Shown: piece after piece, positions 3 to 57,800 of the stretch | Layout: every line of letters begins with the position of its first letter | Position numbering within the stretch: the stretch's first letter is position 1 | Sequence record: MW749003.1 | Length of the DNA stretch: 64,000 bases | Reading direction: 5' to 3' (one strand) | Program-made: the position numbers and the translations under genes | Notes under the pieces: generated by a model | Told to the model about the DNA's origin: nothing | Database searches by the model: none | What the model saw: the letters and a program-made list of their open reading frames with translations, nothing else

Positions 3-3000
3 ATGTATGATTATTCTACTAGAAACCTAAGTTTTATTAAGATCTGGAAGTTTCTAAAAGATCAAGGTATAAAAAATAATAAATTCTTTTTAAAATTAAA
101 TGATGAAACATTACAGGGTGTTGATCCATATGATCCAAATTTAACTGATGAACAAAAGGTAAGAATACAGGTTGAAGTAATGACTAACTTTTGGTATTTC
201 TTAAGGGAAGTAGTAAGAATTCCTGAATCGGGCGGTTCTATTCATTTCATGTTACACAGAGCCAATCTTGGTCAAATGTTTCTTATGGAAAATAATATTG
301 ATATGATTGAAATATTACCTCGTCAGAATGGAAAAACTATCGGTGCAGTATGTCGTTATATATGGGTATATCATTGGGCTACCAAAAATACTCATATGAT
401 TTTTAGTAATAAACAATACGCCGATTCTCAATTAAATATTAAACGTTTTAATGATATAACTGAATTATTACCTAGTTATTTAAAGACTCATTTAGACCCT
501 AAAAAAGATACAAATAACTTAGCACAAATTTCATGTGCAAAAAACAATAATAAAATTGATGCAATGAGTACTGCTAGGACTGTTACTGACGCTGACAAAC
601 TGGGTTAACTAACTATGGCTCAGTATAAACTCCTTTAATTTCTGGAACGTCCTTCCAAGGATAATCAGAAGCTAAGACTTTTAAAAGTAAAGTTCAACGA
701 CTATCGAAACCGACTTATTAGATCGTTGTGATAACGCTAGATAAGGATAAGGGAGTAGAGTAGAATACAAGCTATAGGTATTCAAAAAGGGGAGCACCGT
801 ATTTAGGTGAAGATATAGTCTCATCTCTATGGTAACATAGAGCAGTTCATAAGAGAACGGTATAGGCGTAGCGAACCTATATGAAGGTAACTTGCGTGGT
901 TGTACAGTACCAATTATATGGTTAAATTTTTAGCCCATTATAATAGTGATATTATAATGAATCCTTCTTAACTGCTGGAACATCCTTTTAGGACAATCAG
1001 CATCCAAGCATTGTTATATAAATAACAATGAAGGTTCAACGACTATCGAAACCGACTTATCAGATCGTTGTGATAATGCTAGATAAGGATAAGGGAGTAG
1101 AGTACAACTCAAGCGATTGGAGTTGGAAATGGAAGGCATCTCAATGAGATGAAGATATAGTCTCATCTTCATGGTAACATGGAGCAGTTCATAAGAGAAC
1201 GGTATAGGCGTAGCGAATCTATATGAAGATAAATGATGATGAATTTGCATTTTTAAAATATAATGATACGGTATACGCTAAACTGGTGCAAACTGGCGTA
1301 TTAAAACTCTCTTAACTGCTGGAAACTCCTAAAGTCTTTAGTACCAAAGTGTAATAATCTAAAGGATATATGGACAATCAGCATCCAAGCATTGTTATAA
1401 ATAACAATGAAGGTTCAACGACTATCGAAAAATATAATTTGTATTATATTGAGTAGAGTACTTTCAAGCGAAAGGAAAAGGAGAGCATGATGAAGGTATT
1501 AAATACTGGAGTGAAGATATAGTCTCATCTCTATGGAAACATAGAGCAGTTCATAAGAGAACGCATTAGACGTAGCGAATCTAATGGAAGGTAATTATGA
1601 GTGCTGCACCAGCACTATCAAAAGCATCAGAAGCCGCACAGCGTAATGGTACTCCTTACGGAAAATTAATTACAACAACTCCTAAACTATTGGGCAATAC
1701 ATTAGTAATAATGTAATTGAATCTTCCTTAACTGCTGGAAACTCCTATATGGACAATCAGCATCCAAGCATTGTTGTTTATAACAATGAAGGTTCAACGA
1801 CTATCGAAACCACTCTAACAGATCGTTGTGATAACGCTAGTTAGAAGGAAGGGAGTAGAGTACAGCCTAAGTGATTGAGGTTGGAAAAGGGAAGCATCTC
1901 AATGAGATGAAGATATAGTCTCATCTTCATGGCAACATGAAGCAGTTCATAAGAGAACGCATTAGATGTAGCGAATCTAATGGAAGATAAATGAATGATC
2001 TTGATACAGAAATGGGTAAATATTGTAAGGGTATGATTGATGATGCATGTCCATTTGATGAAGCTTGGTATGATTGGGATATTGATGAAATTAAAAAATA
2101 TATTGAACAGAACTCTCGAAATGACTTTGTTTATTTAGTATTTAATTATAAAGAGTTAGGACATGATGACAAATGGTATCAAAAACAATGTCGTCAGCTC
2201 AATAATGATTTATTAAAAATTAAACGTGAAATATTATTGGAATGGACATTGGCTAACGATACTTCACCTTTTTCAGAGGAACAATTAGCAGAAATTGGAC
2301 AACATGCAGGTGAACCTATTGGTAAGTTTTATGTAATGAAAAGATATAAATTTGAAATTTTCAGTGAAATGCGAAATATATTTAAAAAATCATGGCTAAT
2401 CGGTATAGATATTGGGGCAGGTTTGAATCGAGATTTTACAGTGATATCTATTATTGATCCTAAAGATATGGTTCAAAAAGCAGTATTTAGAAGTAATAAT
2501 ATATCTTTGCCCGATTTAAAAGATTTGGTTATACACCTAGTATTAGAATTTTGTCCTAATGGTGTCATTATTCCAGAACGAAATAACTTAGGTATCTCTT
2601 TAATACAAGATCTACTACGTTCAGAAGTAGCTAATAACTTATATTATGAAGTTAGAGAAGTAAAGGGAGAAAAGAAAGTTGATGACCCAAAAAGATCATC
2701 TAAAAAGACAGTTAAGACTAAAACAAGAGTTTATGGGGTTACTACTAGTAAAGATAGTCGGGATATAATGATCAATGAGATTCTTAGTAATGCAGTTAAT
2801 GATACTCCACATGTGTTTACAAGTAAATATATTTTTGAAGAATTAAGAACATTAGAAAGAAATAAGAAAGGAAAGATTGAACATAGGGATGGAGGTCATG
2901 ATGATACATTATTCTCATGGCTAGTGGCATGCTATGCTTTCTTATATGGAAATAATATAAATAAATTTGTTAAAGTCATCAGTGATGGCGATAATAATGA

Positions 3001-3290: not shown

Positions 3291-4085
3291 TTGACACATA
3301 TAGGAGGAAGTCTAATGGCTGAAATGATGGATGAACAAGAAGCAAAATTTTTAACAGATGAAGATATTGATCATGTAATTACATCTTTATCAGATGATAT
3401 TATTTTTGATAGTTTGAAAGAACAGATTAGCAATGTATTTGTACAATCTGATAGTAATCCAGTATACTATATTACTTATTTTACTGGTAAATATAATTAT
3501 ATTATGAATAAATATTCAGAGTATGAAGAAGTATGTGAAAAAATAAAAGAAATTAGAGAAGAATTTTATGAAAAACTTAAAACACTAATTGAAGAAAAAT
3601 TTGATTTTACATTAAATTTACCTGCATTCTTTGATGATGAAGAGAAGTTTAATATTATTGGGAACCTTTATGATTTCTTCATAATTAGAAATAAAGTAAA
3701 TTCAGTTAATGTTATCTCTGGATATATTGACAAAGAAATTAAGGATCTTATTAAATACTATAAACCTTTAATTGATAAAAAAGATCTTACCTATAATAAC
3801 ATCAAGAAGACTATTAATAAAGATATTGCAGTAATTATTTGTAAACTACCTGACATTATTTCAAATCTGACTGTGGAATCTGGTTTTGATCTAGTACAGC
3901 TAATGATAGATGATGAACAAGAAATTACGAATATGGTTATTGGTTCTTTATTTGATGAGAATACTGAATATATTAATATTGGAGAAAGCTTTATTGATAA
4001 TATTCTTAATGCTATTAAGAAAAATGAAGTATATTATTTGCAGGCTAGAACTCAATTAGTAAATAAATATTCAGATAAAAAATAA
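3291..4085 (+). CDS. Hypothetical protein, late class (likely start ATG 3315)
   Basis: Long ORF; GGAGG RBS before ATG 3315; late promoter. Confidence 0.8.
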   Translation: MTHIGGSLMAEMMDEQEAKFLTDEDIDHVITSLSDDIIFDSLKEQISNVFVQSDSNPVYYITYFTGKYNYIMNKYSEYEEVCEKIKEIREEFYEKLKTLIEEKFDFTLNLPAFFDDEEKFNIIGNLYDFFIIRNKVNSVNVISGYIDKEIKDLIKYYKPLIDKKDLTYNNIKKTINKDIAVIICKLPDIISNLTVESGFDLVQLMIDDEQEITNMVIGSLFDENTEYINIGESFIDNILNAIKKNEVYYLQARTQLVNKYSDKK

Positions 4086-4105
4086 ATTATTGGAGGACTA
4101 TATAA

Positions 4106-4816
4106 ATGGCAATTATTGATAGTAAAAATAATGATATGATTAAAACAATGAAAGGTCTTCAAGAAAGTTCAGAATCACTATTAAAAACTTTTAAAGATTT
4201 AGGTTTAGATAAAGAAAATAAAGAAGAGTTTGAAGAATTAGAAAAGTCTGCTAATGAAATTAAGCAAGAATTTGATACTATTGCTACGATTGAGGAAGAA
4301 GTTAAGAAATATTCTGGCTGTAGTGCTTTTATTAAACAGCTAGAAGAGGTTCTTGAAGATGATTCACAGAGTGAAGAATTAAAAGAAAAAATTAAGAGAC
4401 AGATTTTTATGATTAAAAGTAGTTATAATTTTAAAGCATTTAGTGAATTACAACCTACTTTAAAGCCTAAAACTTTACTTAATAATTATAAAGCATTACG
4501 AAATAAAGCTGAAAATAAATTAAAGAATAATGATACTTTCACATTTAATACATCCTTTTATTTAGAAAAAATGATTAAAGGAGTATTACCAGATGATTTG
4601 AAATCTTACTCTAGAATGACAGCATCATATATTTATGCTTTTATTAATACTGCTTCTCTTAAACGTGGTGGTTATGCTATCTTTGTTGGATTTTTAATTA
4701 ACAATATTAATAATTTAGATAAAGAGTATCCAGAAAAACAAGAACTTGTAGATAATCTTATTAAATTAACACAACTTTTAAAAGATGAATTGATTAGTAA
4801 TGCTAAATGGAAATGA
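4106..4816 (+). CDS. Hypothetical protein
   Basis: 236-aa ORF with GGAGG RBS, followed by a hairpin at 4830-4866. Confidence 0.8.
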   Translation: MAIIDSKNNDMIKTMKGLQESSESLLKTFKDLGLDKENKEEFEELEKSANEIKQEFDTIATIEEEVKKYSGCSAFIKQLEEVLEDDSQSEELKEKIKRQIFMIKSSYNFKAFSELQPTLKPKTLLNNYKALRNKAENKLKNNDTFTFNTSFYLEKMIKGVLPDDLKSYSRMTASYIYAFINTASLKRGGYAIFVGFLINNINNLDKEYPEKQELVDNLIKLTQLLKDELISNAKWK

Positions 4817-21966: not shown

Positions 21967-22740
21967 TTGAATTGGTTTAAAAGAATGTTTATGGCAAAGG
22001 AGAAGGATAAGGAAATTGATTCACTAAGAAGGATGGTTGAACAGAGTAATGAAACTATTAAACTCATGGATGGTGTCATAAAAAGATTAGAGGATAATAT
22101 GACTAAATCCAGACAAGAATCAGCAGCAACTCTTCAGGAAGAAAAAGAATATCAAGATCAAATGAAATTGGAATCAGAAAGGATGCGGGAATATGAATAT
22201 ATTCAAAATGCTCAAAAAGTTGTTTCTACTTATTTAACTAAATATCTAGATCGTTTTAATCTAATTGAAAATCGTTTTTCACTTGCTCATAATATAGATC
22301 TTCTTTCTAATTCTGATGACTTAATGTTTAAAATTGTACAAATGATTAAATTGTCTAAGACAAGTGTTGAATTTGCTACTGTTTGGAACAATCATGTTAT
22401 AAGAATTAGTATTGATAATGATGAAGATGATGTATATTATAGTATTAATGGTGGAAAAAATCTAAGTTCCGACATTGTAGGAACCAAATTTCTTACTAAA
22501 TTTAAGAAGGATATCCAATTAGATATATTGAATTTTCCATGTGTTCAGACAAATAAGATTTACGAAGTAACTGGTAAAAAGTACAAGTATGTCTTAGCTA
22601 ACTCAAGAAGAGAATGTTATTATATACTTAAAGATAAAGAGATGAAAACAAAAATAAAAGAAGTTAGTTTTGTTGAACCAAGTGCATATACACGTTCTAT
22701 TAGATCTAGACTAGTATATGTAGTGCCTCATCAAACTTAA
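21967..22740 (+). CDS. Hypothetical protein with N-terminal coiled coil
   Basis: 257 aa; GGGGAGG RBS and TTG start. Confidence 0.8.
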   Translation: MNWFKRMFMAKEKDKEIDSLRRMVEQSNETIKLMDGVIKRLEDNMTKSRQESAATLQEEKEYQDQMKLESERMREYEYIQNAQKVVSTYLTKYLDRFNLIENRFSLAHNIDLLSNSDDLMFKIVQMIKLSKTSVEFATVWNNHVIRISIDNDEDDVYYSINGGKNLSSDIVGTKFLTKFKKDIQLDILNFPCVQTNKIYEVTGKKYKYVLANSRRECYYILKDKEMKTKIKEVSFVEPSAYTRSIRSRLVYVVPHQT

Positions 22741-22748
22741 TGCTTATA

Positions 22749-22782
22749 AGAGTAAAGTCTTTTATAGACTTTACTCTTTTTT
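22749..22782. terminator. Bidirectional terminator
   Basis: AGAGTAAAGTCT/AGACTTTACTCT plus T-run between convergent genes. Confidence 0.75.
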
Positions 22783-25700
22783 TTATTCCCTAGTTAGAGA
22801 ATAGATTGCTTGTATTGCTTCATTCCCAATTTGGCGGGAGTTTCGACCCATTTGATCTAACATATTTTTCTTTTCCCATATTAGTCGTTCTGCTTCTTCA
22901 TTAGCTTCTTTACTAAATACTCCACGTAGAGATACTGTATCACCCAAAATCTTCCAGTAGATTCGCTACATCTACTGCGTTCTCTTATGAACTGCTCTAT
23001 ATTACTATAGAGATGAGACTATATCTTCACAATATAATTGTGCCCTCCGTTTCCATTTAAAGAGGAATTATAACCTTATTACGGAATACCTCTACCGCTT
23101 GGCTGTACTCTACTCCCTTCCATCTAACTAGCGTTATCACAGCGATCTGTTAGAGTGGTTTCGATAGTCGTTGAACCTTCATCTTTAAATGAATTAAAGA
23201 CGCTTGGATGCTGATTGTCCATATAGGATTTTCCAGCAGTTAAAAGGGTTTTACTACGACAGTAGATTATTATCTTTTATAGGTAAATACTAAATTACCA
23301 CAATCCCATATTCTTTTAAATCTAGTTTTATCCATGATTTCAAATTCAGTACTATTATCACTATATAATTTTGGAAATTTCTTTTTGAGATTAGACTTTC
23401 TATAATTAAATCTATGGAATCGTTGAGTTTTTTCAACATTAACATACCAATAGTTGGGTTTACTAATATGACTTAATTCAAATTTATTATTGATATAAAC
23501 ATTACCATCTGACCAGCGTCTATCTGCATAGGTTATTAATTCTTTCCACTCATAATTTCTCTCGAAGTATTTGAGAAGTTTACTAAAAGCACCTATTACT
23601 CTATAGTCCATATCGGTAGCGAATCTTGATAGTTCAAAAATATTATCAACACTATTTCTACCTAGACTTTTTCTAAGTTTACTAAAAGTCATAACCGCTA
23701 CAAGTTCATCGCCATCTTCTTTTGGAAGCCATAAGCCTAATTTAATTGATGACAAATCTTTTCCCTGAATGTGATTTCTTTCTAGGAATTCATTTTTAAA
23801 ATTGTTATCAATTACTTCTACATAACAATTTCTAGCGTATATTTTAGTAGAATTATTTAATTTTAGTAAGTGTCTTATTTTTTCTTTTACTATGAGAGGT
23901 TTGTTAACCCATTCGTCTTCAAAAATTTGAATTAGTCTAATCCCTTTACTATTACATTTTTCTAATTTTTCTAAATGATAGTTTCTTTTCTTCCCCATTT
24001 GCTCTGAATGCCAATATAAACCATTAAATTCAAAAGCAATTTTTTTGGAAGGAATAAATATATCAATCTCTTTACCTTCAAGTAATTTCCTGTCATTACA
24101 TATGACTTTATCTACAACTAATCCTTTAATAAAAGAAGATAGTTCTTTTTCCATTTTTGATGAACTTTTAAATGCACAATATGGACATCTATTTCCATTA
24201 TTAAAGTTTTTAATTGTAACTTCATACTCCTTATTACAACTATGATGTAACAACCTAATCTTCGTTTTATTATTACGATATTCACCTAATAATGAATACT
24301 CATTATTTGTAACTAAGCTAATTTTTCTTTTAACCTCATCAGTAGTTAGCCTTCTTTTACCAGAACATTGAGGACATCTATTTTTCAAAGCATAATAAGG
24401 AGTAGTCTTCCATTCATAATTACAGTCATTACATCTGAAAAGTATTTTGGTATCGATATTGATATATTTCTCAAGACTTATAAGTCTTCCATTAGTCTTT
24501 TCTTTTAATTCCTTCTTAAACTCATCATTGCTTTTTAATCTTGATTTACCTTTATTAATATCAGCACACTGAGGACATCTACTACCATTATGAAATATAT
24601 CAGGTCTAACCTCATATATATTTCCACATAGTTCATGCCTTAATTTGATTTTAGTCTTATTGTTAATATATTCATTGGATAAAACTGTATAGGTATTGTT
24701 AGTTAGTAATTTAACTTCTTCTTTGAATTCATCCAGTGTCTTTTTGCGTGGCATACACTAATACCTCCAAATAATTAATAATTATTTGTTTATTTGACAC
24801 TGTATTCCCTTAAAAAGAAATAATATTGAATTTATCGTAGTCCCCGCCTAAAGCCTTTAAATAACCATTATAAGGAATTACTGTATCAACAAAAAGTTCA
24901 TCCTCTGCGGGATAGTCAGGGTATATAACAGGATAATCAGGTAAGTATCTATCTTCCAGCTTTTGAGGTCGTGTTTCTTTTGTTGAGAGAATTCTAATTT
25001 TACTTGGATAAATATTCTATAGTGATAGGTAAAGATTTGATATAATCTCCTCTTTTTCCCCCACTTCACACCCTACGTGCGACTTTCACCGCATAAGGCG
25101 TTCCATCAAAATATATTATTTTGACTATGACCCTTCGCTCCAATGGAGTTACCCATCTTCATAACTACTATGGTCTGCTGACTTTCTATATAAGAGTATC
25201 AACTATAATTTCTCTTATATAGAATCTCTGACGTTCCGTAAATGATAGTATAGCTATAACTTAGATGCCTTCTGCCCTATATAAACTTCTATTGTACCAC
25301 ACTTTACAATCAGGTCGTTCACCAGTACCGTATTACTAAACCCTGAATTTATATAGTATAAAAAGGTTCGTGTTCCTCATCATATTATAGCACCGCCCAC
25401 CCTATCTATTAGTATTATAGCATTACTAATATTCAGATGACTTCACCTAACTTCATACAAATATTTTATATAGTTTAAAATAGATGCATGTAGGAGTATT
25501 AGCGACAAGTCTTCAATGAAAATGGTCATATCTTTTACTTGTTCTCATTTACAGTTTAGATTATAAAATCTACTCCATTTCACATTAAATGCTTATAGGA
25601 GAACGTCACATACGATACTGCTCTATTGGATATCTTGTTACATATACATGTTTATCTTTGGTAATATCAACTGCCGCAATGAATAGAATATCAGTTAATG

Positions 25701-26778
25701 TAAAGTTACGTCCTAGTTCTTCTCTATATAATGGAATAGGAATTTCATTCCCCTTATCATCTTTAATCATTAAACTATTAAAACGACTTTCAATAGACTT
25801 AATGTATAATGAGATCATCTTTTTAACTGCTTCCTCAGAAAATTGTTCTCTTATATTACTAATAGTTATCTCTTTTCCATTATGCTTAAATTTACTAAGT
25901 TCTGATTCACGTTCAAGAATATAATCTTGGATATATTTAAGAAAGAATGGATAAAATTCTACCACTAATTGTGATAGGGGAATACCTGTCCATCCAAATC
26001 TAATAGGGTTATCCTTCCAGCTATTTGACTTAAATCGTGGTGCTGAGATTACACTACGAGTTGCATAATCAACAGATTTACCTAAAGAGTTTTGATGGAA
26101 CATACCATTTTTACCAGCTAAAGAGGATGTAAAATAGTCATAGATATCATATAAAAGAGTCTGAATAGATGATTCTGTTATTACTCCCATAAAATCATAA
26201 TCTTCACCCTTAGAAATTGATTGGCTATACCTAATTAATTTAGCATATTTGTCATTCACTTCATCAACAGCTTTAATCGTATCATTAGAAGATTTTGAGG
26301 GATTATAATCTCTATAAAATGCTGGAATCACTAAATATTTGTCAATAAATATATCATCCTTACCAAGTTTATTTAATAATGTAAGATAACTTGTTCGTCT
26401 ATCAGTTCCAGTATTACTAAATTTTAATTGGTCGTAAATAGTATAAAAATAGGTAACTCCAGTTTTACCATTATCTTTATCTTCAACTAACTTGCCGCCC
26501 TCAACTTTAAAATATTTCTTTCCAGATAGACAATCTGCAATTTTTCGATCCATAGAGGTTAGAAGCTTATAAATTACTGGATGGAGAAATTTTCTCTTTA
26601 AGTCTATATAACCGAAAATTATTTTTCTTTCTTTACTTCCCGGATAACCAAAAATACTAGTTGAAAATAATCCATCTTCAGTTGGTATATTTCCCATATT
26701 AAAGTAAATCGGATTTGTTACTTCTTTACATGCATGAGAAGTAATAAATTTATCTATATTTAATGTATCTATTTTCAT
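22783..26778 (-). CDS. Multisubunit RNAP beta' N-terminal (catalytic) subunit, probably virion RNAP, spliced: complement(join(22783..22944,24834..25018,25614..26778)), 503 aa
   Basis: GLFSTSIFG, GKSVDYATRSVI and TRYP motifs. The spliced frame (1512 nt) reads TRYPIEQY|QNIYPSKI...NGYLKALGGDYD|GDTVSLRG, restoring the DxDGD catalytic motif. The late promoter at 26801-26812 fits a packaged enzyme. Confidence 0.92.
22945..24833 (-). mobile_element. Group I intron (1889 nt) with a homing endonuclease gene in the P1 loop, inserted in the DYD|GD active-site motif
   Basis: Exon end CUACGAU pairs with GUCGUAG (23254-23260). P4, R and S elements and the conserved 3' module lie at 22945-23250; terminal G at 22945. 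Confidence 0.93.
23270..24754 (-). CDS. Intron-encoded homing endonuclease: Zn-finger repeats + Vsr/EDxHD-like nuclease + C-terminal Mom-like GNAT domain
   Basis: Three H/C-xx-C...RCPxC repeats; EIDIFIP...FEFNGLYWH; ELSRFAT...ITYADRRWSDGNVY. Own late promoter at 24779-24790 and GGAGG RBS. Confidence 0.8.
   Translation of the reverse strand: MPRKKTLDEFKEEVKLLTNNTYTVLSNEYINNKTKIKLRHELCGNIYEVRPDIFHNGSRCPQCADINKGKSRLKSNDEFKKELKEKTNGRLISLEKYINIDTKILFRCNDCNYEWKTTPYYALKNRCPQCSGKRRLTTDEVKRKISLVTNNEYSLLGEYRNNKTKIRLLHHSCNKEYEVTIKNFNNGNRCPYCAFKSSSKMEKELSSFIKGLVVDKVICNDRKLLEGKEIDIFIPSKKIAFEFNGLYWHSEQMGKKRNYHLEKLEKCNSKGIRLIQIFEDEWVNKPLIVKEKIRHLLKLNNSTKIYARNCYVEVIDNNFKNEFLERNHIQGKDLSSIKLGLWLPKEDGDELVAVMTFSKLRKSLGRNSVDNIFELSRFATDMDYRVIGAFSKLLKYFERNYEWKELITYADRRWSDGNVYINNKFELSHISKPNYWYVNVEKTQRFHRFNYRKSNLKKKFPKLYSDNSTEFEIMDKTRFKRIWDCGNLVFTYKR
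25019..25613 (-). mobile_element. ORF-less group II intron (595 nt, IIB/bacterial class B-like)
   Basis: 5' end GUAUG; D1 closure UGACGUUC/GAACGUCA; ~25-nt D4 hairpin; D5 ACGCCUUAUGCGGUGAAAGUCGCACGUAGGGUGUG (CGC triad, GAAA loop); D6 ending CCUAUCACUAU. Excision restores the frame (c+ag = Gln). Confidence 0.9.
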
Positions 26779-49068: not shown

Positions 49069-49437
49069 ATGAAAACAACAATTACTGCTGAGGAATTAGT
49101 AGAAGCATATAAAAAGACTGGTATTAAACCCATTAATAAAGTATATGTAAATCCAGTAATAAATTGTGGTTGTGCATTATCAGTTCTATCTATCAGTAAT
49201 AGTGACGGTAAATTATCATTAAGTAAAATTAATGCTATTAGAGATGTTGAAGAATTAGAAGATATTTTTAGAAATAAAATTGGTCTTGATCCAAACTATA
49301 ATATCGAAGCTTTTATGGATGGATTTGATTGCATTATGAGTGGACAAATGGGTACTAGGGAATGGGATGAAGGATATAAATGTGCAAATGTTATTAAAGA
49401 AGAATTTTTAATTAATGATCTAAGTCGGGGGGTTTAG
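49069..49437 (+). CDS. Hypothetical protein
   Basis: 122-aa ORF with RBS. Confidence 0.7.
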   Translation: MKTTITAEELVEAYKKTGIKPINKVYVNPVINCGCALSVLSISNSDGKLSLSKINAIRDVEELEDIFRNKIGLDPNYNIEAFMDGFDCIMSGQMGTREWDEGYKCANVIKEEFLINDLSRGV

Positions 49438-49439
49438 TA

Positions 49440-49946
49440 ATGGAGAAAGAATCTATAAAAGATTTATTAAGATTAAGAGTTAGTAAATTTTCATTAGAAA
49501 ATGAATTTAAAAAAATAAATGAAGATGATATTGAGAATATTACTAATGAAATCATTAATAATGTTGATAGAACAATATTGACTAAACATGATTTTGATCA
49601 TTATTTAAGAAATAATGTAAATCCTCATATTATTGATGATATTATACTAAATGCTACTAAAGAATATTTAAATGGATACACAGTATCAGATCCTAAAGAA
49701 TATATATTTTTGTTAGTAATTTCTAATATGATTAAATATCATAGAGATTTTGACACATCTGGAATTGGATATTCTGAAGAACAGATTGAGAAGAACGAAA
49801 ATGAAGCTAGTTTATCTTCTTCTTTATCTATCATTGACATTAAAAAAATTTTTGGTGGAAAAGAAGATATTGAGAAACATATTACATTTTTAATGAGAAC
49901 TTATGGTGTAAGCAGAAATAGAATTAAGTACTTTTCTATTAACTAA
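49440..49946 (+). CDS. Hypothetical protein
   Basis: 168-aa ORF coupled to the upstream gene. Confidence 0.7.
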   Translation: MEKESIKDLLRLRVSKFSLENEFKKINEDDIENITNEIINNVDRTILTKHDFDHYLRNNVNPHIIDDIILNATKEYLNGYTVSDPKEYIFLLVISNMIKYHRDFDTSGIGYSEEQIEKNENEASLSSSLSIIDIKKIFGGKEDIEKHITFLMRTYGVSRNRIKYFSIN

Positions 49947-49983
49947 AAAGATCTTAGAGGATTAAAAGTAATTGGGGAATAAT

Positions 49984-50030
49984 AAAATAAAGGATAGAGA
50001 TAATTTAATCTCTATCCTTTATTTTTTTTT
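49984..50030. terminator. Bidirectional terminator
   Basis: AAGGATAGAGAT/ATCTCTATCCTT with A/T tails between convergent genes. Confidence 0.75.
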
Positions 50031-51759
50031 TTGTATACTTAAAAACTAAATTTCCACAATCCCAAATTCTATCATAACCAGCTTCTCTCATAATTTGAAT
50101 TTCTGTTTTATCATTACTATAAATTTCTGGAAATAATTCTTTTAATCTTTGTTTTCTATAGTTGTATCTATGTGAAAGACTCAATTTATTTTTATTAAAA
50201 TACCAATAATTTGGCTGAGAATTATGCATAAAGTGAAAGTTATTTTTATAATATACATTTCCTTCTGACCATCTTAAATCAGCATATGTTATGATGTTAT
50301 TCCAATCATAATTCTTTTTAAAATAACTGAATAATTTTCCAAAACTACCTATTACATTATAGTCTCTTTCTGTAGCAAATCTACTTAATTCATAGTCATA
50401 TTTATTCCCTTTTTGCCCTAAGCTAACTCTAGGTTTACAGAATGTCATTACTGCTACTAACTCATCACCCTCATTCCTTGGATACCATAGTCCCAGTTTA
50501 ATAGTAGAGTTATCAGATCCCTGAATATGATTTTTATCTAAAAATTCTCTTTTCACATTATTCTGAATTTCTTTTATATAACATTTTCTAGCATATATTT
50601 TTTCTCCATTATTTAAACCTAAAATATGTTTTATCTTTCCCTTTATAAGTTCTTTATTATCAATCCACTCATTCTCAAATAAATGAATTAATCTTATACC
50701 TTTTTCATTACATTTTTTCAATTTATTTAGATGGTAGTTTCTACCTTTTCCTTGAGATTCACCATGCCAATATAAACCATTATATTCAATTGCTATTTTC
50801 TTTGAAGGTATATAAATATCCAGTTCTAAACCTTCAAGTATTTTTCTGTCTGATAGAATTACATTAGTGCTATTGGGGAGAATTTGTTTAATATAATCAT
50901 ATAATTCAATCTCATCTTTTGAATTATGTTTCTTTAGTTGACATCTAGGACAATCTCTTTTAACTTTTTTACCTCTTGAATTACCATGTAAAATATCGAC
51001 CGGTCTAACCTTCCAAGAATAGCCACATGAATGCTCAATAACTATTGGAGTTTTATTATTAATATATCTACTCTTAATTGTATAATCATTACTATTAAAT
51101 ATTCTATAAAAATCTTCTTTAAAACCATTAGATCCTTTATTTTTTGGATTTTTATTACATATATTACACCTTTTTCTTTTTAGGAAATTAGTTGGTGTAA
51201 TAAAGAAATTATGAGAATCACTAGTATTGTGTCTCATCTCAATTTTATCTTGAGAGCTAATATATTCTCCTAATACAGTATATTCATCTCCTACTAAATC
51301 ATACACTTCTTTAATAAACATTTCAGTAGTCTTTGTCTTTTTCCTTTTTATTAGTTTCTTAGTACAATCAGGACATCTTGAACCCTTACTGAGAAAGTCA
51401 TTAGGTCTTTTTTTAAATTCCTTATTACAGATGTTATGTCTAAGTAATACTAGTTCAGAACTATTAATATATTCTCCTAATACAGTATATTCATCCCCTA
51501 CTAATTCATACACTTCTTTAATAAACATTTCAGTAGTCTTATTTTTTCTTTTAGATATTCTTTCTGATTTATGTAAAGGACATCTATTACCTGCATTTAA
51601 AAAGCCATTTGGTGTGACATAGTATTCATGACTGCATTTTTCATGTTTCATTTTTATTTTATTATTAGTTCCAGTATATTCTCCTAATACAGTATATTCA
51701 TCCCCTACTAATTCATACACTTCTTTAATAAACATTTCAGTAGTCTTCTTTTTAGGCAA
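50005..51759 (-). CDS. Free-standing homing-endonuclease-like protein: Zn-finger array + Vsr/EDxHD-like nuclease + Mom-like GNAT (likely TTG start 51759)
   Basis: Paralog of 23270-24754 (ELDIYIPSKKIAIEYNGLYWH; ELSRFAT...ITYADLRWSEGNVY). It lies outside any intron, after the beta gene stop. The start was chosen by the AAAGGA RBS and similarity to MPRKKT. Confidence 0.8.
   Translation of the reverse strand: MPKKKTTEMFIKEVYELVGDEYTVLGEYTGTNNKIKMKHEKCSHEYYVTPNGFLNAGNRCPLHKSERISKRKNKTTEMFIKEVYELVGDEYTVLGEYINSSELVLLRHNICNKEFKKRPNDFLSKGSRCPDCTKKLIKRKKTKTTEMFIKEVYDLVGDEYTVLGEYISSQDKIEMRHNTSDSHNFFITPTNFLKRKRCNICNKNPKNKGSNGFKEDFYRIFNSNDYTIKSRYINNKTPIVIEHSCGYSWKVRPVDILHGNSRGKKVKRDCPRCQLKKHNSKDEIELYDYIKQILPNSTNVILSDRKILEGLELDIYIPSKKIAIEYNGLYWHGESQGKGRNYHLNKLKKCNEKGIRLIHLFENEWIDNKELIKGKIKHILGLNNGEKIYARKCYIKEIQNNVKREFLDKNHIQGSDNSTIKLGLWYPRNEGDELVAVMTFCKPRVSLGQKGNKYDYELSRFATERDYNVIGSFGKLFSYFKKNYDWNNIITYADLRWSEGNVYYKNNFHFMHNSQPNYWYFNKNKLSLSHRYNYRKQRLKELFPEIYSNDKTEIQIMREAGYDRIWDCGNLVFKYTKKKIKDRD
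51261..51747. repeat. Three 73-bp near-identical direct repeats, 207-bp period (51261, 51468, 51675)
   Basis: Each encodes KTTEMFIKEVY(E/D)LVGDEYTVLGEY. Two copies are identical; the third differs at 2 positions. Confidence 0.9.
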
Positions 51760-51780
51760 AACAATCATCCTTTTATATAA

Positions 51781-51820
51781 ATTGGATTTCAACTATTATT
51801 TTGTTTAGTTGAAATCCAAT
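51781..51820 (-). promoter_or_regulatory. Late promoter AACA-N6-TA forming the loop of a perfect 15-bp inverted repeat
   Basis: Arms ATTGGATTTCAACTA and TAGTTGAAATCCAAT; the loop 51796-51805 is AACAAAATAA on the minus strand. Confidence 0.65.
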
Positions 51821-51838
51821 TTGTTTATCAATAAAAAA

Positions 51839-54800
51839 TTATTCTGAATATATTTTACCAATTTCTCGTTTAAGATGTACTAATGCTTTGTTTAAATATA
51901 GAGCATTATAAATATCAACGGTCATGCGTGAAACAATACTCAATGGACTCATAATAGCTTCAATATTCTCATCTGGATCATTCTCACTAAAAGGCTCTTG
52001 ATCTTTAGGAATAACATCAGATACAATTGTTTTAAGTGCTGTATAATACGTAATCTTATCTCCAATACCAAGTTCATCATCATACTCAATATAAATCTCA
52101 ATGAGTAGTCCGTCTACTTCAGTACCTTTAATTTTCTCACCTGATTGCTTTTGAATAGGTTTAAGATTAACAGAAGTCAGATCATTAGTAACAGACTTAA
52201 TCTTATCTTCTTTCTTCTTACTATCTTTAATATAGTTCTTCAGAATCTTTTGTACTGAAGGAGAAAACTCACTGATATCTTTATTGTAGTACATTACAAC
52301 ATCTACAATCTTACCAGTATATTTAGAACTTACTTTGTTCTTAGATAACTCATTAATAGTCTCATTAAAGTCATCTCCTAGTTTATCTAAGAGTTGGTTG
52401 AGTGATTTATCTTCAAAGGAGTTTTCAAAGATAATCAATGGATCACCAGTCTTAACCATATCGCCTTTCTTAACAATAAAGTCAATGTTTGAGTTAACTC
52501 CAAGAGCAAGTTCTTTCTTCATAGTAATTTTAGTAGATAGGTCTTGAGATAAGCTTTCTGTAATAATACTACTATCTTCATAAGTGTAATCTGCGCTTGC
52601 TAGTGCTACTTTACAAAGCTTCCCTGTAGTATACGTGATATCATCTTTCTTATCGCCAAGGAAGTAACTTGGATTCTTCGCTAGGATATCATCTTTTTTG
52701 AATTTCTCTCCTACTTTGATAATGAGTTCTTTACGATTAGCAATGTAAACAATTATCTTCCACCAAATTCGCTAGTTTTGGTGCGCCCTCTAACGGACTG
52801 CTCCATGTTACCATGAAGTTGAGACTATATCTTCAAAGTTCCCTGTTTCCCAGTATACATAAATAAAAGTATACCAGATTTCATCTCAGAAACCTGCCAC
52901 CAATCGCTTGTGGGGTACTCTACTCATCTTTATTAATAAGATTTTCGATAGTCGTTGAACGTTCTCTATTAGTTTAATAGAGCTTCGCTTCTGATTATCC
53001 TTTTAATAAGGACTTCCCAGAAATTAAAGGAATTTAACGTGAGCCTTTAAACCCACCATTACTATTCTTACTCATATGCTCGGAGAGATCAATGACGTCT
53101 TTCTTACCATCATTATAACGAACGACAGCTAGCTCATGTTCTTCATCTATGGACTCTAGAACTCCATCTTTTTTTGCTCTAAACACAAAGTCGTCACTTA
53201 GAATATAAGCAACAGTCTTCTCTACACCACTACCAAATAGAGGTTTAGATTGCTTTGTGGTAGGAATGATCGTTAACTTCCATTAGATTCGCTACGTCTA
53301 ATGCGTTCTCTTATGAACTGCTCTATATTTCTATAGAGACGAGACTATATCACTATCCTTAATAATTAAGGATAACTCCCATTTCCATTTAAGGGATTCT
53401 CACCCACTCCAAACACTTGAGCCGTACTCCTATTGCGGAATTTCACCGCTACTCACAATCCTAAGATTGCTTTCGGATAGTCGTTGAACTTTATTCAAAA
53501 GTTTTCTTTAAGTATTCTTCTAGATTACTTAACTGTGTATAATTGAATCTGAATAGTTTATAACCCTTTCTTTTACAATACTCATTTTTTAGATTATCAC
53601 GGAATTGTATATCCTCTAAGCCTTCTTCTCCACCAAAAAAATCAGATGGCTTAAAATGTTGCTTACCATCATATTCAACTAATATTTTAGTTCCGTCCTC
53701 ATCTTCAAAATAGAAATCAAATCGTAATCTTCTTCCTGTTTTTGGATTAACTAAGTCTGAAAATGATTTTTCAATTTCAAAGTAGATATTATTCTGGTTG
53801 AAATAATTAGTAATAATTTGAATCCCACTAGAATTTCTTCCAATTCCATTACTACAATGAGGACATCTGTACCCTAAAATAAAGTTATTTGGCTTTATCT
53901 TAAAAGTTTTTTCACATTTTCCATGATATAATGTAACATGTTTGTGAGCATGGGTATATTCATTTGTTAGAGAATATTCATTACCAACCAATTCATAAAG
54001 TTTTTCTTTAAATGTCTCTGTAGTTCTTTTTTTAGTTTTAGCACAATTTGGACAACGATAACCAGAAAGAAAATTTACAGGTAATACAGAATATTCATTA
54101 CCGCATTTGTTATGTCTCATCTTAACGTGAGTCATATTGTTTATATATTCAGAAGTAGGTTTATATTCATTACCGACCAATTCTTCAACTTTTTTTCTAA
54201 AATCAGAATCGGTTCTTTTTTTATTTTTAGCACAATTTGGACAACGATCTCCTCGTCTGATAAACTGATATGGTTGAACCTTATATTCATTACCACATTT
54301 ATTATGTCTAAATAAAATTTTAGTATGCTGTGCTAAAAATCTTCCTAATACCACATATTCATCACCAGTTAATTCTTTTACTTTCTTTACAACTTCCATA
54401 TGTTTTTTATTCAATAAACAAATTGGACATTTAGTTACTTTATTTTTCTTAAAGAAACTATCTGGTCTCATTTCAAATGTACTATCGCATACTTTATGAT
54501 AAAATATAGCATTTATAGTTGATGATATATATTCTCTAACTTCAAATTCATTATTATATACATCTTTTAATCTTCTAGAATAAACTTTACTTAACATATT
54601 ACACCCTCCGACAAACAGTTGTAATAATATGTTAAATTATTTAAAAACTATTTTGAATATTAGCTGCTGATTCTCCAATTCTATTAGTTTTCAAACCTTC
54701 ACGCTTATTATTTCTAATTACGTTGTGGTCTAATAGACTCTAAGGAATTTCCAGCAATTAGAGAGTTTATCTAATAGTATTACTACTATTAGGCACGAAT

Positions 54801-57800
54801 CATGCTTTTGTTGGGTACTCTGCATGCCTACTCGTGGAGGATCAGCATGCCTTACTGTAAAGGAGTTCAATAATTCTGCTGGACCATAGATATTTGTCGT
54901 GTTATTTTTTGTATTAGGATTGGTGTCTAAGAATCCTCGTGTGTTTTTAAATGCTGGATCAAAAGTTAACTGTCTAACCCATTATCTTCATATAGGTTCG
55001 CTACACCTATACCGTTCTCTTATGAACTGCTCCATGTTACCATGAAGATGAGACTATATCTTTATCTAGTCAAAAAAAAAGAAAGGAGATGACTAGATAT
55101 CTCCCATTTCCATTTAAGGGATTCTCACCCACTCCAATCGCTTGAGCCGTACTCCTATTGTGTGTTAACCACTAAAGGATAGTCGTTGAACGTTACTCTC
55201 GTTATAATTAAAAATAATTTATAAAATTATTATTTTATTTTTTCCATAATAGTAGCTCTCCTTTTTAACTTACTACTATTATAATATATTTAACGAGAGT
55301 CTTCGATACGGATTGTCCTATTATTAGGAGTTTCCCGTAGTTAGAGAGATTTTATCATTATATATCACTATATAAGGGGGCAGTTTAATTCACCCCAACT
55401 TTCATTATCTTCCACTAGATTCGCTACATCTAATGCGTTCTCTTATGAACTGCTCTATGTTTCCATAGAGATGAGACTATATCATCATCCTATTAGGATG
55501 CCTCCCATTTCCAACTCCAATCGCTTGAGTTGTACTCTACTCCCTTCCACTAACTAGCGTTATCACAACGATTTGTTAGAGTGGTTTCGATAGTCGTTGA
55601 ACCTTACTCTAATGAGTCTTGGATGCTGATTGTCCTTAAAGGATTTTCCAGCAGTTAAAGAGGTTTACTTATAATATTTCTATTATAAGGGACTATTATA
55701 AATCTTGTCTGGAAATTCAAGAATTATAATAATTCAATCCGAGTCGGGCGTTGACATTGCCATGATTCCACGCATACTAGGGTCATAAGCTCGAATATCA
55801 GTTGTATAAGCATCCGTTTTCCTTCATATAGGTTCGCTACACCTATACCGTTCCTTAGAACTGCTCTAAGTTTCCTTAGAGACGAGACTATATCATCACT
55901 TAAAAAGTGCCTCCCATTTCCAGCCTCAATTGCTTAGGCTGTACTCTACTCCCTTCCTACTAACTAGCGTTATCACAACGATCTGTTAAAGTGGTTTCGA
56001 TAGTCGTTGAACCTTTACCTTATTACAAATAATTTGTAACTTAGGTACTTGGTTGCTTATGATTACCCAATCCTTTAAATTTTTACCATACCTGAATTGT
56101 TATATTCAGCCATCTATTATGTTTCCATATAGATTTGGTATTAAAGGCTCTAAGGGTTTTCCAGCAGTTAAAGAGGTTTTAATTGGACTAAAACACTTTA
56201 ATCCAAGTTCCTTCCTGAAAGCCCCTTGTAAGTAGCCGCACCACCCTTTTCAATTTCCAAAGAAGGGTTAAGGACACTATATTCATCGACAGTAGGTGAA
56301 TTCATTAATGTCTTTAATAGAATATCCTGTGGAACAGACATCTTAATAGGATTACCAGCTTTCAGTGTATCCTTATACGTTTTAAATGAATCTGCCAAGA
56401 TTTTATATAGATAAGCATTTACTTGCTCAGTACCACGGATTCGATATGAATTCATATCATTCAGTGGACTATAGCTCATATCTTCCAATAAGGTATTCGC
56501 ATACAACAATATGTCATAGATATTCTCAGGTAATTCTAACTGTTTCAGCACATCTAATGTGATAGGATCAACCATTAGAGATAGAGTATTGTGAAGACCT
56601 TTACCCATATTTCTACTACCGAACATCTCATAGAAAGTCTCAATATAAGGATCTTTAGAGTTCATTTCTTCAAATGCATACTCTTCAGTAGCCATAGTAC
56701 TTAGACCACTTAATAATAGGGAATTTCTCAATAAAGAATTATTATAATATAGGTATCCATCTTTAAAACGGATCTTATCATAGTCATCATCAATTGTAAT
56801 TCTCTTATTTTTAGTATCAAAGCTATATTCAATATTATATCTTTCTAATAAATCTTCTAATCCTAATTCATATCCAAGAAGAACCACTAGAGGGATCATT
56901 CTATTATTAATACGAACTCGGTTATATGCTAGAGACTTAGAATTACTTAAAGAAGATAATTTTTTATAAGCTTCCTCACTAAGTGAAGTGACAACAACTT
57001 TAATAATGAGTTCTGAAAGACTCATATCAGTATTTTCTTGTTTCTTATTATTAATCAGATAAACTCTTTTACTTGAACGATTAAGAGCAATAACGTTTTC
57101 ATTATCTTTTGTATGACCGATTGGTAAGAATTGTTTATCATCAATATTAATCTTAGCAAGCTTAGCCATATTATCAAGATCACTTTTCAATAAATCTTCT
57201 ACTTCTTTTTGACTGAACATAAGTTTATATTCATCATTCTCTAAGCTTAGAAGGAAAGAAGAAATCTCATTATATTCAAGAGTTGTTTCATAACCCTCAT
57301 TAATTGTTAGAGCGTTACCTAGGCGATAATTAAACTTCTTACCTGATACCTTAAATTCATTTAAATCCATACCAAAGAGTTTCTTAAGTTTCTCAGTTTT
57401 ATGAGATAATTTAGAACCAAAGCGCATGACAAAAAACTTATTGTAGTTAGTAGTAATCTGAACTTCATCAGGTTTTGTTTTTACAATGGGCAAAGATAGA
57501 ATTTGCTTAAGAATTAATTTTTTACCACCATTAATATTCATAAACCTACCATCTCTGATAATAGGATAATCAAATTTAACAGTATGCTTTACATTACGAT
57601 CATCTTGGAAAGTAACAGTATAAGTTAATTTTTTTGATAAATCAGTAGATGTGTCTTCTGTTTTAATATCACTTACAAATAATTTAACATCGCTATCTCC
57701 ATTAAATGATGAAAGAACTGCAACTAAGTCTTTTTTCATCTGTTTTTCAAAGTAGCTCATATCAAAATCTTTGAGATTTGAATATCTAGTTTCTTCTTGA

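Follow-up and report, generated by a model that had tools for sequence, protein, structure and literature searches.

The window analysed here, a stretch of 64,000 nt from sequence record MW749003.1, comes from the Bacillus jumbo phage vB_BspM_Internexus, a relative of PBS1/AR9, and holds the genes that we call HEG1, HEG2 and HEG3, together with an interrupted gene for the beta' subunit of the virion RNA polymerase (Table 1). HEG1, the orthologue of AR9 g146, was recovered on the (-) strand at exactly the coordinates given in the initial annotation, and its reading frame opens with an ATG preceded, about 10 nt to the 5' side, by a GGAGG ribosome-binding site. GenBank labels the gene "Hef-like homing endonuclease" in both Internexus and AR9, and the full-length protein matches PHROG 559 (E 6e-155) and PHROG 3339 (E 3e-107). 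From its N-terminus, it consists of a set of three zinc-ribbon repeats, then an EDxHD/Vsr-like nuclease, and lastly a C-terminal domain of 198 aa on which most of the following concentrates.

Table 1. Features of the window, with the evidence on which each assignment is based.
Feature	Position	Strand	Description and evidence
HEG1 (INTERNEXUS_28)	23270-24754	(-)	Hef-like homing endonuclease ORF, 494 aa; ORF list and GenBank annotation
HEG1 residues 1-196	24167-24754	(-)	Three treble-clef zinc-ribbon repeats, CapR / DUF4379 type
HEG1 residues 197-296	23867-24166	(-)	EDxHD/Vsr-like nuclease core; phmmer to PDB 3r3p
HEG1 residues 297-494	23273-23866	(-)	Mom-like GNAT domain, ~198 aa; AF2, Foldseek, VIA-align, hhalign
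Group I intron with HEG1	22945-24833	(-)	1889 nt; exon mapping to intron-less Goe21 rpoC1
Group I ribozyme core	22995-23306	(-)	Rfam RF00028, 85.5 bits, E 2.3e-20, full model matched
beta' exon 1	25614-26778	(-)	Mapping to Goe21
beta' exon 2	24834-25018	(-)	N-terminal beta' part; blastn to Goe21 nt 1166-1350; unannotated in GenBank record
beta' exon 3	22783-22944	(-)	Begins GGT GAT ACA (G D T...); mapping to Goe21
HEG2	50005-51759	(-)	Free-standing paralogue, 584 aa from ATG; upstream TTG at 51792 possible
HEG2 parts	nuclease ~50623-50862; Mom-like domain 50029-50622	(-)	Zinc-ribbon-like repeats come first
HEG3	53491-54597	(-)	Zinc-ribbon array and DUF559-like (EYDGKQHF) nuclease, without Mom-like domain

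The N-terminal repeats are recognised by Pfam PF21817 (E 2.5e-13) and PF14311 (E 2.6e-10), carry CxxC pairs at residues 60, 108/127 and 190, and presumably form a DNA-binding array. Behind them, residues 222-294 match the catalytic domain of the phage intron endonuclease I-Bth0305I (PDB 3r3p; phmmer E 5.8e-6), in agreement with the EDxHD/Vsr-like nuclease proposed earlier from the sequence. The position of the catalytic Asp is kept, D231 aligning with D196 of I-Bth0305I, and N244 and H249 align with positions 208 and 213; the fifth active-site residue, D222, falls opposite His260 of HEG1 in a part of the alignment that is uncertain. I-Bth0305I, the EDxHD prototype, shares with HEG1 not only the Vsr-like core but also a DNA-binding region N-terminal to the nuclease and a location in a phage group I intron within an essential, conserved gene, whereas it uses NUMOD/HTH motifs in place of zinc ribbons and terminates with the nuclease, having no GNAT domain (Taylor et al., 2011; PMC3239194).

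The homing character that had been claimed for this gene is borne out by its surroundings, as HEG1 lies inside a group I intron that the close relative Goe21, whose beta' gene is uninterrupted, lacks. The 5' splice site comes after ...GACTACGAT, the last base of the intron is G, and the ribozyme core overlaps the final 37 nt of the HEG1 reading frame, stop codon included. Exon 2 ends in the GGDYD codons of the Mg-binding motif and the resulting junction reads GGDYD|GD, so that the intron interrupts beta' within the codons of its catalytic Mg-binding motif; once spliced, the beta' reading frame is 1512 nt long (503 codons), in frame, and equal in length to that of Goe21. Identity to Goe21 is 82.7% in exon 2, which adjoins the intron, against 98.8% in exon 1 (blastn), and a co-conversion tract would be expected to leave such a drop beside the intron.

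HEG2 combines the same parts in a free-standing gene. As in AR9 (g188/g189), the virion RNA polymerase beta gene lies just upstream of it; PBS1 has HEG2 as well, and Goe21 lacks it at this intergenic spot. Its Mom-like domain is 59% identical to that of HEG1 (tblastn E 5e-78), compared with 37% for the N-termini. HEG3 is a paralogue of AR9 g147 (34% identity, E 8e-44) and has the zinc-ribbon array alone in common with HEG1, at ~35% identity. The initial annotation had placed the C-terminal domain in HEG1 and HEG2 and noted its absence from HEG3, a distribution that tblastn reproduces, with no further copy of the domain across the window. HEG3 cannot, however, be taken as the HEG1 enzyme minus this domain: its nuclease is of a different type, in which BLASTP finds no similarity to that of HEG1.

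We modelled the C-terminal domain of HEG1 with AF2, obtaining a GNAT fold at a pLDDT of 94.5, and compared this model with known structures. The best Foldseek matches are chains A and B of the Mu Mom crystal structure 8bv8 (E 3.6e-7), ahead by more than two orders of magnitude of generic GNATs, which follow at 1e-4 or weaker; the 13 matches at E ≤ 1e-3 are Mom and GNAT acetyltransferases. GNAT toxins such as 7byy also occur in the Foldseek results. VIA-align gives Z 13.8 over 134 residues for the model against Mom, with Z values of 12-13.8 to dozens of GNATs, and here Mom has the highest percentage identity and an aligned length among the longest of the matches listed. At the profile level, hhalign of the family against 31 Mom orthologues yields 91.2% probability (E 1e-6, 128 columns), the HMM of Mom orthologues scores up to 29 bits on members of the Hef-like family, and relatives 52-56% identical to the HEG1 domain reach 26.5, 27.7 and 36.7 bits on Pfam PF25680 "Mom", for which the gathering score is 27.1. 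The window's own domains are further removed: scans of the C-terminal domains of HEG1 and HEG2 against Pfam (E ≤ 10) and NCBIfam returned no match, Mom included, and pairwise BLASTP of the HEG1 domain against Mu Mom is non-significant (E 0.11), although the motifs are nonetheless in register. Since these direct family scans are empty, the link to Mom rests on relatives, profiles and structure, and on that footing the predicted fold supports the suspected likeness: it is a GNAT fold, and among solved structures Mu Mom is closest to it. The motifs that first drew attention to the domain (ELSRF at residue 374, YADRRW at 409 and GNVY at 417) are also real, and constitute the conserved core of the family.

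Membership of the GNAT superfamily leaves room for substrates other than DNA, and the domain might, for example, acylate aminoacyl-tRNA or protein in the manner of TacT/AtaT-type or RimI-type GNATs. VIA-align places RimI (5isv) level with Mom at Z 13.8, and the toxins found by Foldseek also fit this idea, but the sequence profiles pick out Mom rather than other GNATs, the Foldseek margin in favour of Mom is wide, the Mom-specific R111 and D149-x-R151 residues are retained, and the domain has DNA-binding and DNA-cutting domains as its permanent fusion partners. We therefore regard a non-DNA substrate as very improbable.

The family to which this domain belongs is large and widespread. HMMER searches with the Mom-like domain retrieved 15,292 cluster representatives at E ≤ 1e-3, and tblastn located it in 398 phage records, at up to 11 places per record; some genomes have as many as ten copies. 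Hundreds of phages infecting Vibrio, Campylobacter, Klebsiella, Acinetobacter, Escherichia (T4-like), Prevotella and Thermus carry the nuclease and Mom-like cassette. This spread across phages of many unrelated hosts means that the cassette is not an adaptation to uracil-containing DNA, a link that the initial annotation had put forward. The nuclease motif stands ahead of the Mom-like domain in 65 of the 81 viral-contig reading frames with at least 100 aa upstream (drawn from 84 viral-contig reading frames in 80 loci). Mean pairwise identity across the family falls from 49.5% in the Mom-like domain to 44% in the nuclease and 26% in the N-terminus, making the Mom-like domain the best-conserved part of the protein and the N-terminus the most divergent, and the N-terminal domains of relatives vary in kind as well, comprising zinc ribbons, DUF723, DUF7487 and HTH. 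Taken together, these data show or strongly imply that the nuclease and the Mom-like GNAT form one conserved cassette, on which the DNA-binding heads differ between phages. Two short matches, P0143 and P0237, were considered as stand-alone copies of the domain and discarded, as both begin ~20 nt from contig ends and are thus truncations; the HEG1-type domain is found behind a nuclease, unlike Mom.

A fusion of Mom to a nuclease is already described and is not new. From sequence, Iyer et al. (2021) predicted jumbo-phage Mom domains fused to nucleases of the restriction-endonuclease fold (PMC7824862), a domain combination identical to that of HEG1, and read them as restriction-modification-like conflict systems. 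Applied to HEG1, this published prediction would make the protein a weapon in a single polypeptide, in which the Mom domain protects the phage genome by modifying its adenines throughout, leaving the nuclease to attack DNA of the host or of superinfecting phages generally; that several copies per genome are common is in keeping with it. The context of HEG1 points instead to homing elements, because of the intron and the precise insertion polymorphisms: HEG1 is carried by a self-splicing intron whose insertion point is exact and highly conserved, where the allele of a sister phage is intron-less, and HEG2 is present or missing at a single intergenic spot, depending on the phage. The nuclease, moreover, belongs to the EDxHD homing family, and every copy has its own variable DNA-binding head, which fits site-specific and not genome-wide action. 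The namesake of the family argues in the same direction, as the 2010 review by Edgell (PMC2988022) describes hef of phage U5 as cleaving nrdB and its product as a site-specific homing enzyme. We accordingly judge general restriction-like attack to be improbable.

The comparison with other Hef-like endonucleases (including U5 Hef, the Hef proteins of Campylobacter phages, Dickeya phage F-LimIII, and AR9 g146 and g188) strengthens the family assignment of HEG1, which shares with them the full-length PHROG 559/3339 relationship and the annotation. Like HEG1, these genes are multi-copy and either free-standing or intron-borne, although most of those described are free-standing and HEG1 is intron-encoded. 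In a T4-like phage the cassette sits between nrdA and nrdB and is 39% identical to HEG1 over 301 aa (E 4e-46), while its N-terminus is unrelated to the zinc-ribbon repeats that head HEG1. The GNAT/Mom domain goes unmentioned in the I-Bth0305I paper and in the Hef-like gene literature found by our searches, which likewise returned no experimental test of the Mom-like domain in any Hef-like protein and no report of Mom-type modification in the DNA of phages carrying Hef-type enzymes.

Mu Mom (8bv8; PF25680) is a Gly-tRNA-dependent N6-adenine DNA aminoacyltransferase, in which mutagenesis has shown R111, S124 and R151 to be essential (S124A being catalytically dead) and H58A, D149A and Y159A to reduce activity greatly (PMC13219725). 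Most of these residues have equivalents in the HEG1 domain, at an overall identity of ~16-19%: H58, R111, D149, R151 and Y159 align with H328, R377, D411, R413 and Y420, and E108 with E374. We computed conservation over 132 unique family sequences, among which H328, E374, R377, Y420 and also G388, at the start of helix a3, are invariant (132/132), with D411 kept in 127/132 and R413 in 125/132. In T4-like Hef the D411 position is occupied by Asn, so some lineages at least manage without this Asp.

For S124 the assignment is uncertain, and the HEG1 domain has no secure equivalent. Three sequence alignments give three registers, which put Y384, I387 or F390 opposite S124, a hydrophobic or aromatic residue each time, whereas S391 is indicated only by a register based on the secondary structure of two AF2 models; in both models helix a3 has the serine as its third residue, with a basic residue coming next. 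At the S391 position, 89/132 sequences have Ser and 35/132 have Gly, HEG2 being one of the latter. Helix a3 itself has 12 residues in the HEG1 domain against 16 in Mom, and the HEG1 loop is closer to that of a canonical GNAT. The alignment begins only at Mom residue 37 (hhalign), the HEG1 domain starting directly behind the nuclease, and Mom Y59 is aligned to I329; Y59, W48 and the first ~36 residues of Mom have no counterparts in the HEG1 domain in this alignment. W48 is a dimerisation residue of Mom, and the basic segment 11-19 is proposed to bind tRNA (PMC13219725). Towards the C-terminus, short strands and helices are inserted between the last two core strands of the AF2 model (domain residues ~135-182), and by sequence this insertion can be aligned to the HTH-like residues 175-209 of Mom only around ...YH....

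These observations can be read in two ways. The Mom-like domain may be catalytically dead and kept for DNA handling, transferring no group but either binding, and perhaps flipping, a base beside the cut or dimerising for two-strand cleavage, and the insecure S124 equivalent, with a best candidate position that varies between Ser and Gly, the replacement of D411 by Asn in T4-like Hef and the missing tRNA-binding N-terminus all favour this. Mom, moreover, is a tight dimer (PMC13219725), I-Bth0305I dimerises for cutting (PMC3239194), and pocket residues could stay conserved through binding alone. Against a dead module, the Mom-like domain is the best-conserved part of the protein, and its invariant residues are those that count for catalysis in Mom. 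GNATs hold their cofactor at the motif-A loop and the start of helix a3, and it is here that the domain has its invariant Gly, along with what we take to be a motif-A-like loop (consensus V-I-G-G-A-S-K-L-L). A head that reads sequence, furthermore, should diverge between paralogues whose targets differ, as the N-termini of HEG1 and HEG2 do (37%), but not their Mom-like domains (59%). On balance we hold a dead module to be doubtful, while giving it serious weight.

We lean instead, tentatively and at somewhat less than even odds, towards the Mom-like domain still being an enzyme, one that, held on DNA by the remainder of the protein, flips a base (most likely adenine) within or close to the recognition site and acylates or aminoacylates it. 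The donor could be aminoacyl-tRNA, as in Mom, or acyl-CoA, which the more canonical GNAT loop might suggest. Such a base modification would render the carrier genome's own site refractory to cutting, and this protection would count above all in free-standing family members, whose insertion leaves the target undestroyed. An intron-borne homing endonuclease has no need of self-protection, since the intron destroys the site, and for HEG1 this is a point against the domain being an enzyme.

For the protein as a whole we are far more confident, placing at roughly 0.9 the probability that HEG1 is a Hef-type EDxHD/Vsr-like homing endonuclease residing in a mobile group I intron within the codons of the beta' Mg-binding motif. 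The variable N-terminal zinc-ribbon array would provide target binding, the EDxHD nuclease would cleave the allele without the intron in a co-infecting relative, for example Goe21, and recombinational repair would then carry the intron and its gene into the cut allele. A more far-reaching proposal, which we put forward as an unlikely one, is that Hef-type enzymes are self-contained cut-and-mark elements whose Mom-like domain would attach an acyl or aminoacyl group to one adenine inside their own recognition site.

Of the mobile nucleases that large phages carry, Hef-like genes are some of the commonest, and the chemistry of Mom was solved in 2026, with glycine coming from Gly-tRNA and the essential residues known (PMC13219725), so assays already available could directly test the role of the Mom-like half. 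A dead domain would be a clear case of a DNA-modifying enzyme reused for DNA handling. If it is active, it would show a way for a selfish nuclease to bring its own immunity, and would be a naturally site-targeted DNA adenine-modifying enzyme. Were the cut-and-mark proposal true, a genome newly gaining a free-standing copy would be immune at once with its target site still intact, the logic of restriction-modification would be compressed into a single homing protein, and Mom-type DNA chemistry would have a second, site-specific branch.

In both stretches compared, 22500-26000 and 49400-57000, the window matches Bacillus phage vB_BspM_Internexus (MW749003.1) exactly and at unchanged coordinates. 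The virion RNA polymerase beta' gene of Internexus, a Takahashivirus about 98% identical to the uracil-DNA jumbo phages PBS1 and AR9 over 22500-26000 of the window, is split by two introns. In the related phage Goe21 the N-terminal part of beta' is one uninterrupted 1512-nt gene, and mapping this gene onto the window supplied the exon borders and those of the group II intron between exons 1 and 2 (see table). The group I intron has a U preceding its 5' splice site and ends in G; the ORF of HEG1, its Hef-like homing endonuclease, begins 80 nt inside it, and the ribozyme core downstream overlaps the final 37 nt of that ORF, including the stop codon. The spliced beta' ORF is in frame, with the junction GGDYD/GD inside the polymerase's Mg-binding aspartate motif, a classic homing target.

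Features of the beta' locus and of HEG1 in the window
Feature	Position	Strand	Evidence and remarks
beta' exon 1	26778-25614	minus	Goe21 mapping; 98.8% identical to Goe21
Group II intron	25019-25613	minus	595 nt, ORF-less; Rfam RF02004 80.5 bits, RF00029 55 bits
beta' exon 2	25018-24834	minus	Goe21 mapping; 82.7% identical to Goe21
Group I intron with HEG1	24833-22945	minus	1889 nt, flanked by exons 2 and 3; Goe21 mapping
HEG1	23270-24754	minus	ORF list; 494 aa; GGAGG ribosome-binding site
Three treble-clef zinc-ribbon repeats	HEG1 residues 1-196		Pfam CapR E 2.5e-13, DUF4379 E 2.6e-10
EDxHD/Vsr-like nuclease	HEG1 residues ~197-296		phmmer to I-Bth0305I catalytic domain, PDB 3r3p, E 5.8e-6
Group I ribozyme core	23306-22995	minus	Rfam, 85.5 bits
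beta' exon 3	22944-22783	minus	Goe21 mapping; 94.2% identical to Goe21

Judged by sequence, the divergence of exon 2 from Goe21 (82.7% identity versus 98.8% for exon 1) looks like that expected of a co-converted flank; lying between two introns, the exon resembles a co-conversion tract with the introns' more distant donor as its source. The GenBank record leaves it (24834-25018) unannotated and gives exons 1 and 3 as separate 'beta subunit' proteins. INTERNEXUS_27 (23124-23222), a 32-aa 'hypothetical protein' within the ribozyme core, is probably no real gene.

HEG1 and its AR9 orthologue g146 are both labelled 'putative Hef-like homing endonuclease' in GenBank; PHROG 559 covers HEG1 end to end (E 6e-155), and its label, 'HNH endonuclease', is a misnomer here. 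The phmmer alignment to 3r3p places D231 at the position of I-Bth0305I D196, and N244 and H249 at positions 208 and 213. The initial annotation, which had proposed a Vsr-like homing endonuclease fused to a Mom-like GNAT domain, is thus upheld as to the nuclease by this match, and as to homing by the location of HEG1 within a group I intron and the intron-less Goe21 allele.

A direct Pfam and NCBIfam search with residues 297-494 gave no match, and the nature of this C-terminal domain emerged from structure and profile comparisons. AlphaFold2 (55-sequence alignment) modelled it with pLDDT 94.5 and pTM 0.83, and in a Foldseek search of the PDB this GNAT fold retrieved chains A and B of phage Mu Mom (8bv8) first (E 3.6e-7 and 6.4e-7), with ordinary GNAT acetyltransferases behind, from 1e-4. 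VIA-align scored RimI and Mom equally (Z 13.8), the highest identity, 19% across 134 aligned residues, being that to Mom. Compared profile to profile with 31 Mom orthologues, the domain reached 91% probability (E 1e-6, 128 columns); the HMM built from these orthologues gave members of the Hef-type family scores of up to 29 bits, and relatives 52-56% identical to the window's domain scored 26.5-36.7 bits on Pfam PF25680 'Mom' (cut-off 27.1 bits). On these structural, profile, HMM and PF25680 matches, the domain is a Mom-clade GNAT, as the Mom-like assignment had anticipated; it belongs to a distinct branch and is not a Mom orthologue. It is secure that HEG1 is an intron-borne, Hef-type EDxHD homing endonuclease carrying such a domain.

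Mom takes glycine from Gly-tRNAGly and attaches it to N6 of adenine in double-stranded DNA; it cannot do without R111 and S124, the mutant R151A is inactive, the mutants H58A, Y59A, W48A, Y159A and W181A are severely impaired, and D149A has greatly lowered activity (PMC13219725). Across 132 unique Hef-type domains, drawn from 55 database proteins and 84 ORFs in 80 viral contigs, H328, R377 and Y420 (Mom H58, R111 and Y159) are invariant, as are E374 (Mom E108) and G388, where helix a3 begins; D411 (Mom D149) is kept in 127 and R413 (Mom R151) in 125. In the same comparison Mom Y59 is replaced by Ile or Leu, and Mom W48 and the first 36 residues have no counterpart. At the position of S124, each of three alignments has a hydrophobic or an aromatic residue. 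By secondary structure S391 is a candidate counterpart: in the AlphaFold2 models of the two proteins, S124 of Mom and S391 of the Hef-type domain both come third in helix a3, the one before an Arg and the other before a Lys. At the S391 position 67% of the 132 sequences have Ser and 27% have Gly, among the latter HEG2, the free-standing paralogue. The loop before a3 (consensus V-I-G-G-A-S-K-L-L) is, we presume, nearer the canonical GNAT cofactor loop (motif A) than that of Mom.

We give a probability of about 0.45 to the domain still being an enzyme, which would act on DNA that the rest of the protein keeps tethered; this is favoured because the domain is better conserved than any other part of the protein, its invariant residues are catalytic ones in Mom and the cofactor loop is intact. 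The main rival, a dead module serving base flipping, DNA clamping or dimerisation, is possible if somewhat doubtful, and draws on the uncertain counterpart of S124, the Ser/Gly variation at S391, an Asn at the D411 position in T4-like Hef and the loss of the Mom N-terminus.

The domain is widespread, with 15,292 cluster representatives at E<=1e-3 and 398 phage records, often multi-copy, including phages of Vibrio, Campylobacter, Klebsiella, Acinetobacter, Escherichia, Salmonella, Dickeya, Prevotella (Lak) and Thermus. On this spread of hosts the suggested link to uracil-DNA is rejected. Of the 81 ORFs on viral contigs in which the domain is preceded by 100 aa or more, 65 carry the nuclease motif in that upstream part; two short matches inspected as possible stand-alone domains were both cut off at contig ends. 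A T4-like coliphage has the same nuclease and Mom-like cassette (39% identity, E 4e-46) between nrdA and nrdB, joined to an unrelated N-terminus; the hef of phage U5 is reported to cleave nrdB (PMC2988022; PMC3239194). Over 300 random family pairs, mean identity is 26% for the N-terminus, 44% for the nuclease and 49.5% for the Mom-like domain, a gradient by which the domain is, at the level of sequence, a constant module in a conserved cassette of two domains rather than a target-reading part. The published reading of Mom-nuclease fusions as a restriction-modification-like weapon (PMC7824862) fits this architecture but is at odds with the intron context and the insertion polymorphisms.

A search of the whole window located a single further copy of the C-terminal 198 aa of HEG1, in HEG2 (50005-51759, minus; 59% identity, E 5e-78); HEG3 (53491-54597, minus) has none, just as first noticed. 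HEG2 directly follows the gene for the virion polymerase beta subunit, an arrangement shared with AR9 (g188/g189), and is missing from the matching intergenic spot in Goe21. HEG3 shares with HEG1 the zinc-ribbon repeats alone (~35% identity) and has a nuclease of another type, the one point on which the initial annotation is corrected; one DNA-binding array thus serves two nuclease cassettes within this genome. HEG3 and AR9 g147 (3600-4508 of AR9 locus L005) are paralogues (34% identity, E 8e-44) in which the HEG1/HEG2-type array is joined to another nuclease, of the EYDGxQHF type and with a weak DUF559 match.

In AR9 (L005, 3513-5010) the same group II intron as in the beta' gene of Internexus holds g147, a 302-aa zinc-ribbon and Vsr/DUF559-like homing endonuclease, between domains D1-D4 and D5, and the annotation assigns g147 to a group I intron; a phage group II intron with such an endonuclease, not a reverse transcriptase, merits separate attention. 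Group I introns are densely clustered in two places, with four Rfam matches in the beta gene (52801-56243, minus; AR9 g189 is a join of six pieces) and four more in tandem at 596-1942 (plus). Overlapping the 3' end of the match at 55453-55711 (minus) is a 118-nt stretch (~55436-55553) that shares 85.7% identity with an unannotated part of the 45-kb Staphylococcus phage StB12, whose host is of another genus.

HEG1 and its family were already annotated, PF25680 already reaches relatives, and a 2021 paper had described Mom-nuclease fusions of jumbo phages (PMC7824862); our literature searches found no paper on the experimental function of the Mom-like domain of Hef-like proteins. New here are a comparison, residue by residue, with the Mom data of 2026, the recognition that within a swappable cassette this domain is conserved most strongly, and the exact intron site within the polymerase active-site motif. 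A plausible role for the domain, if active, is marking of the recognition site, which would render carriers of the free-standing copies immune.
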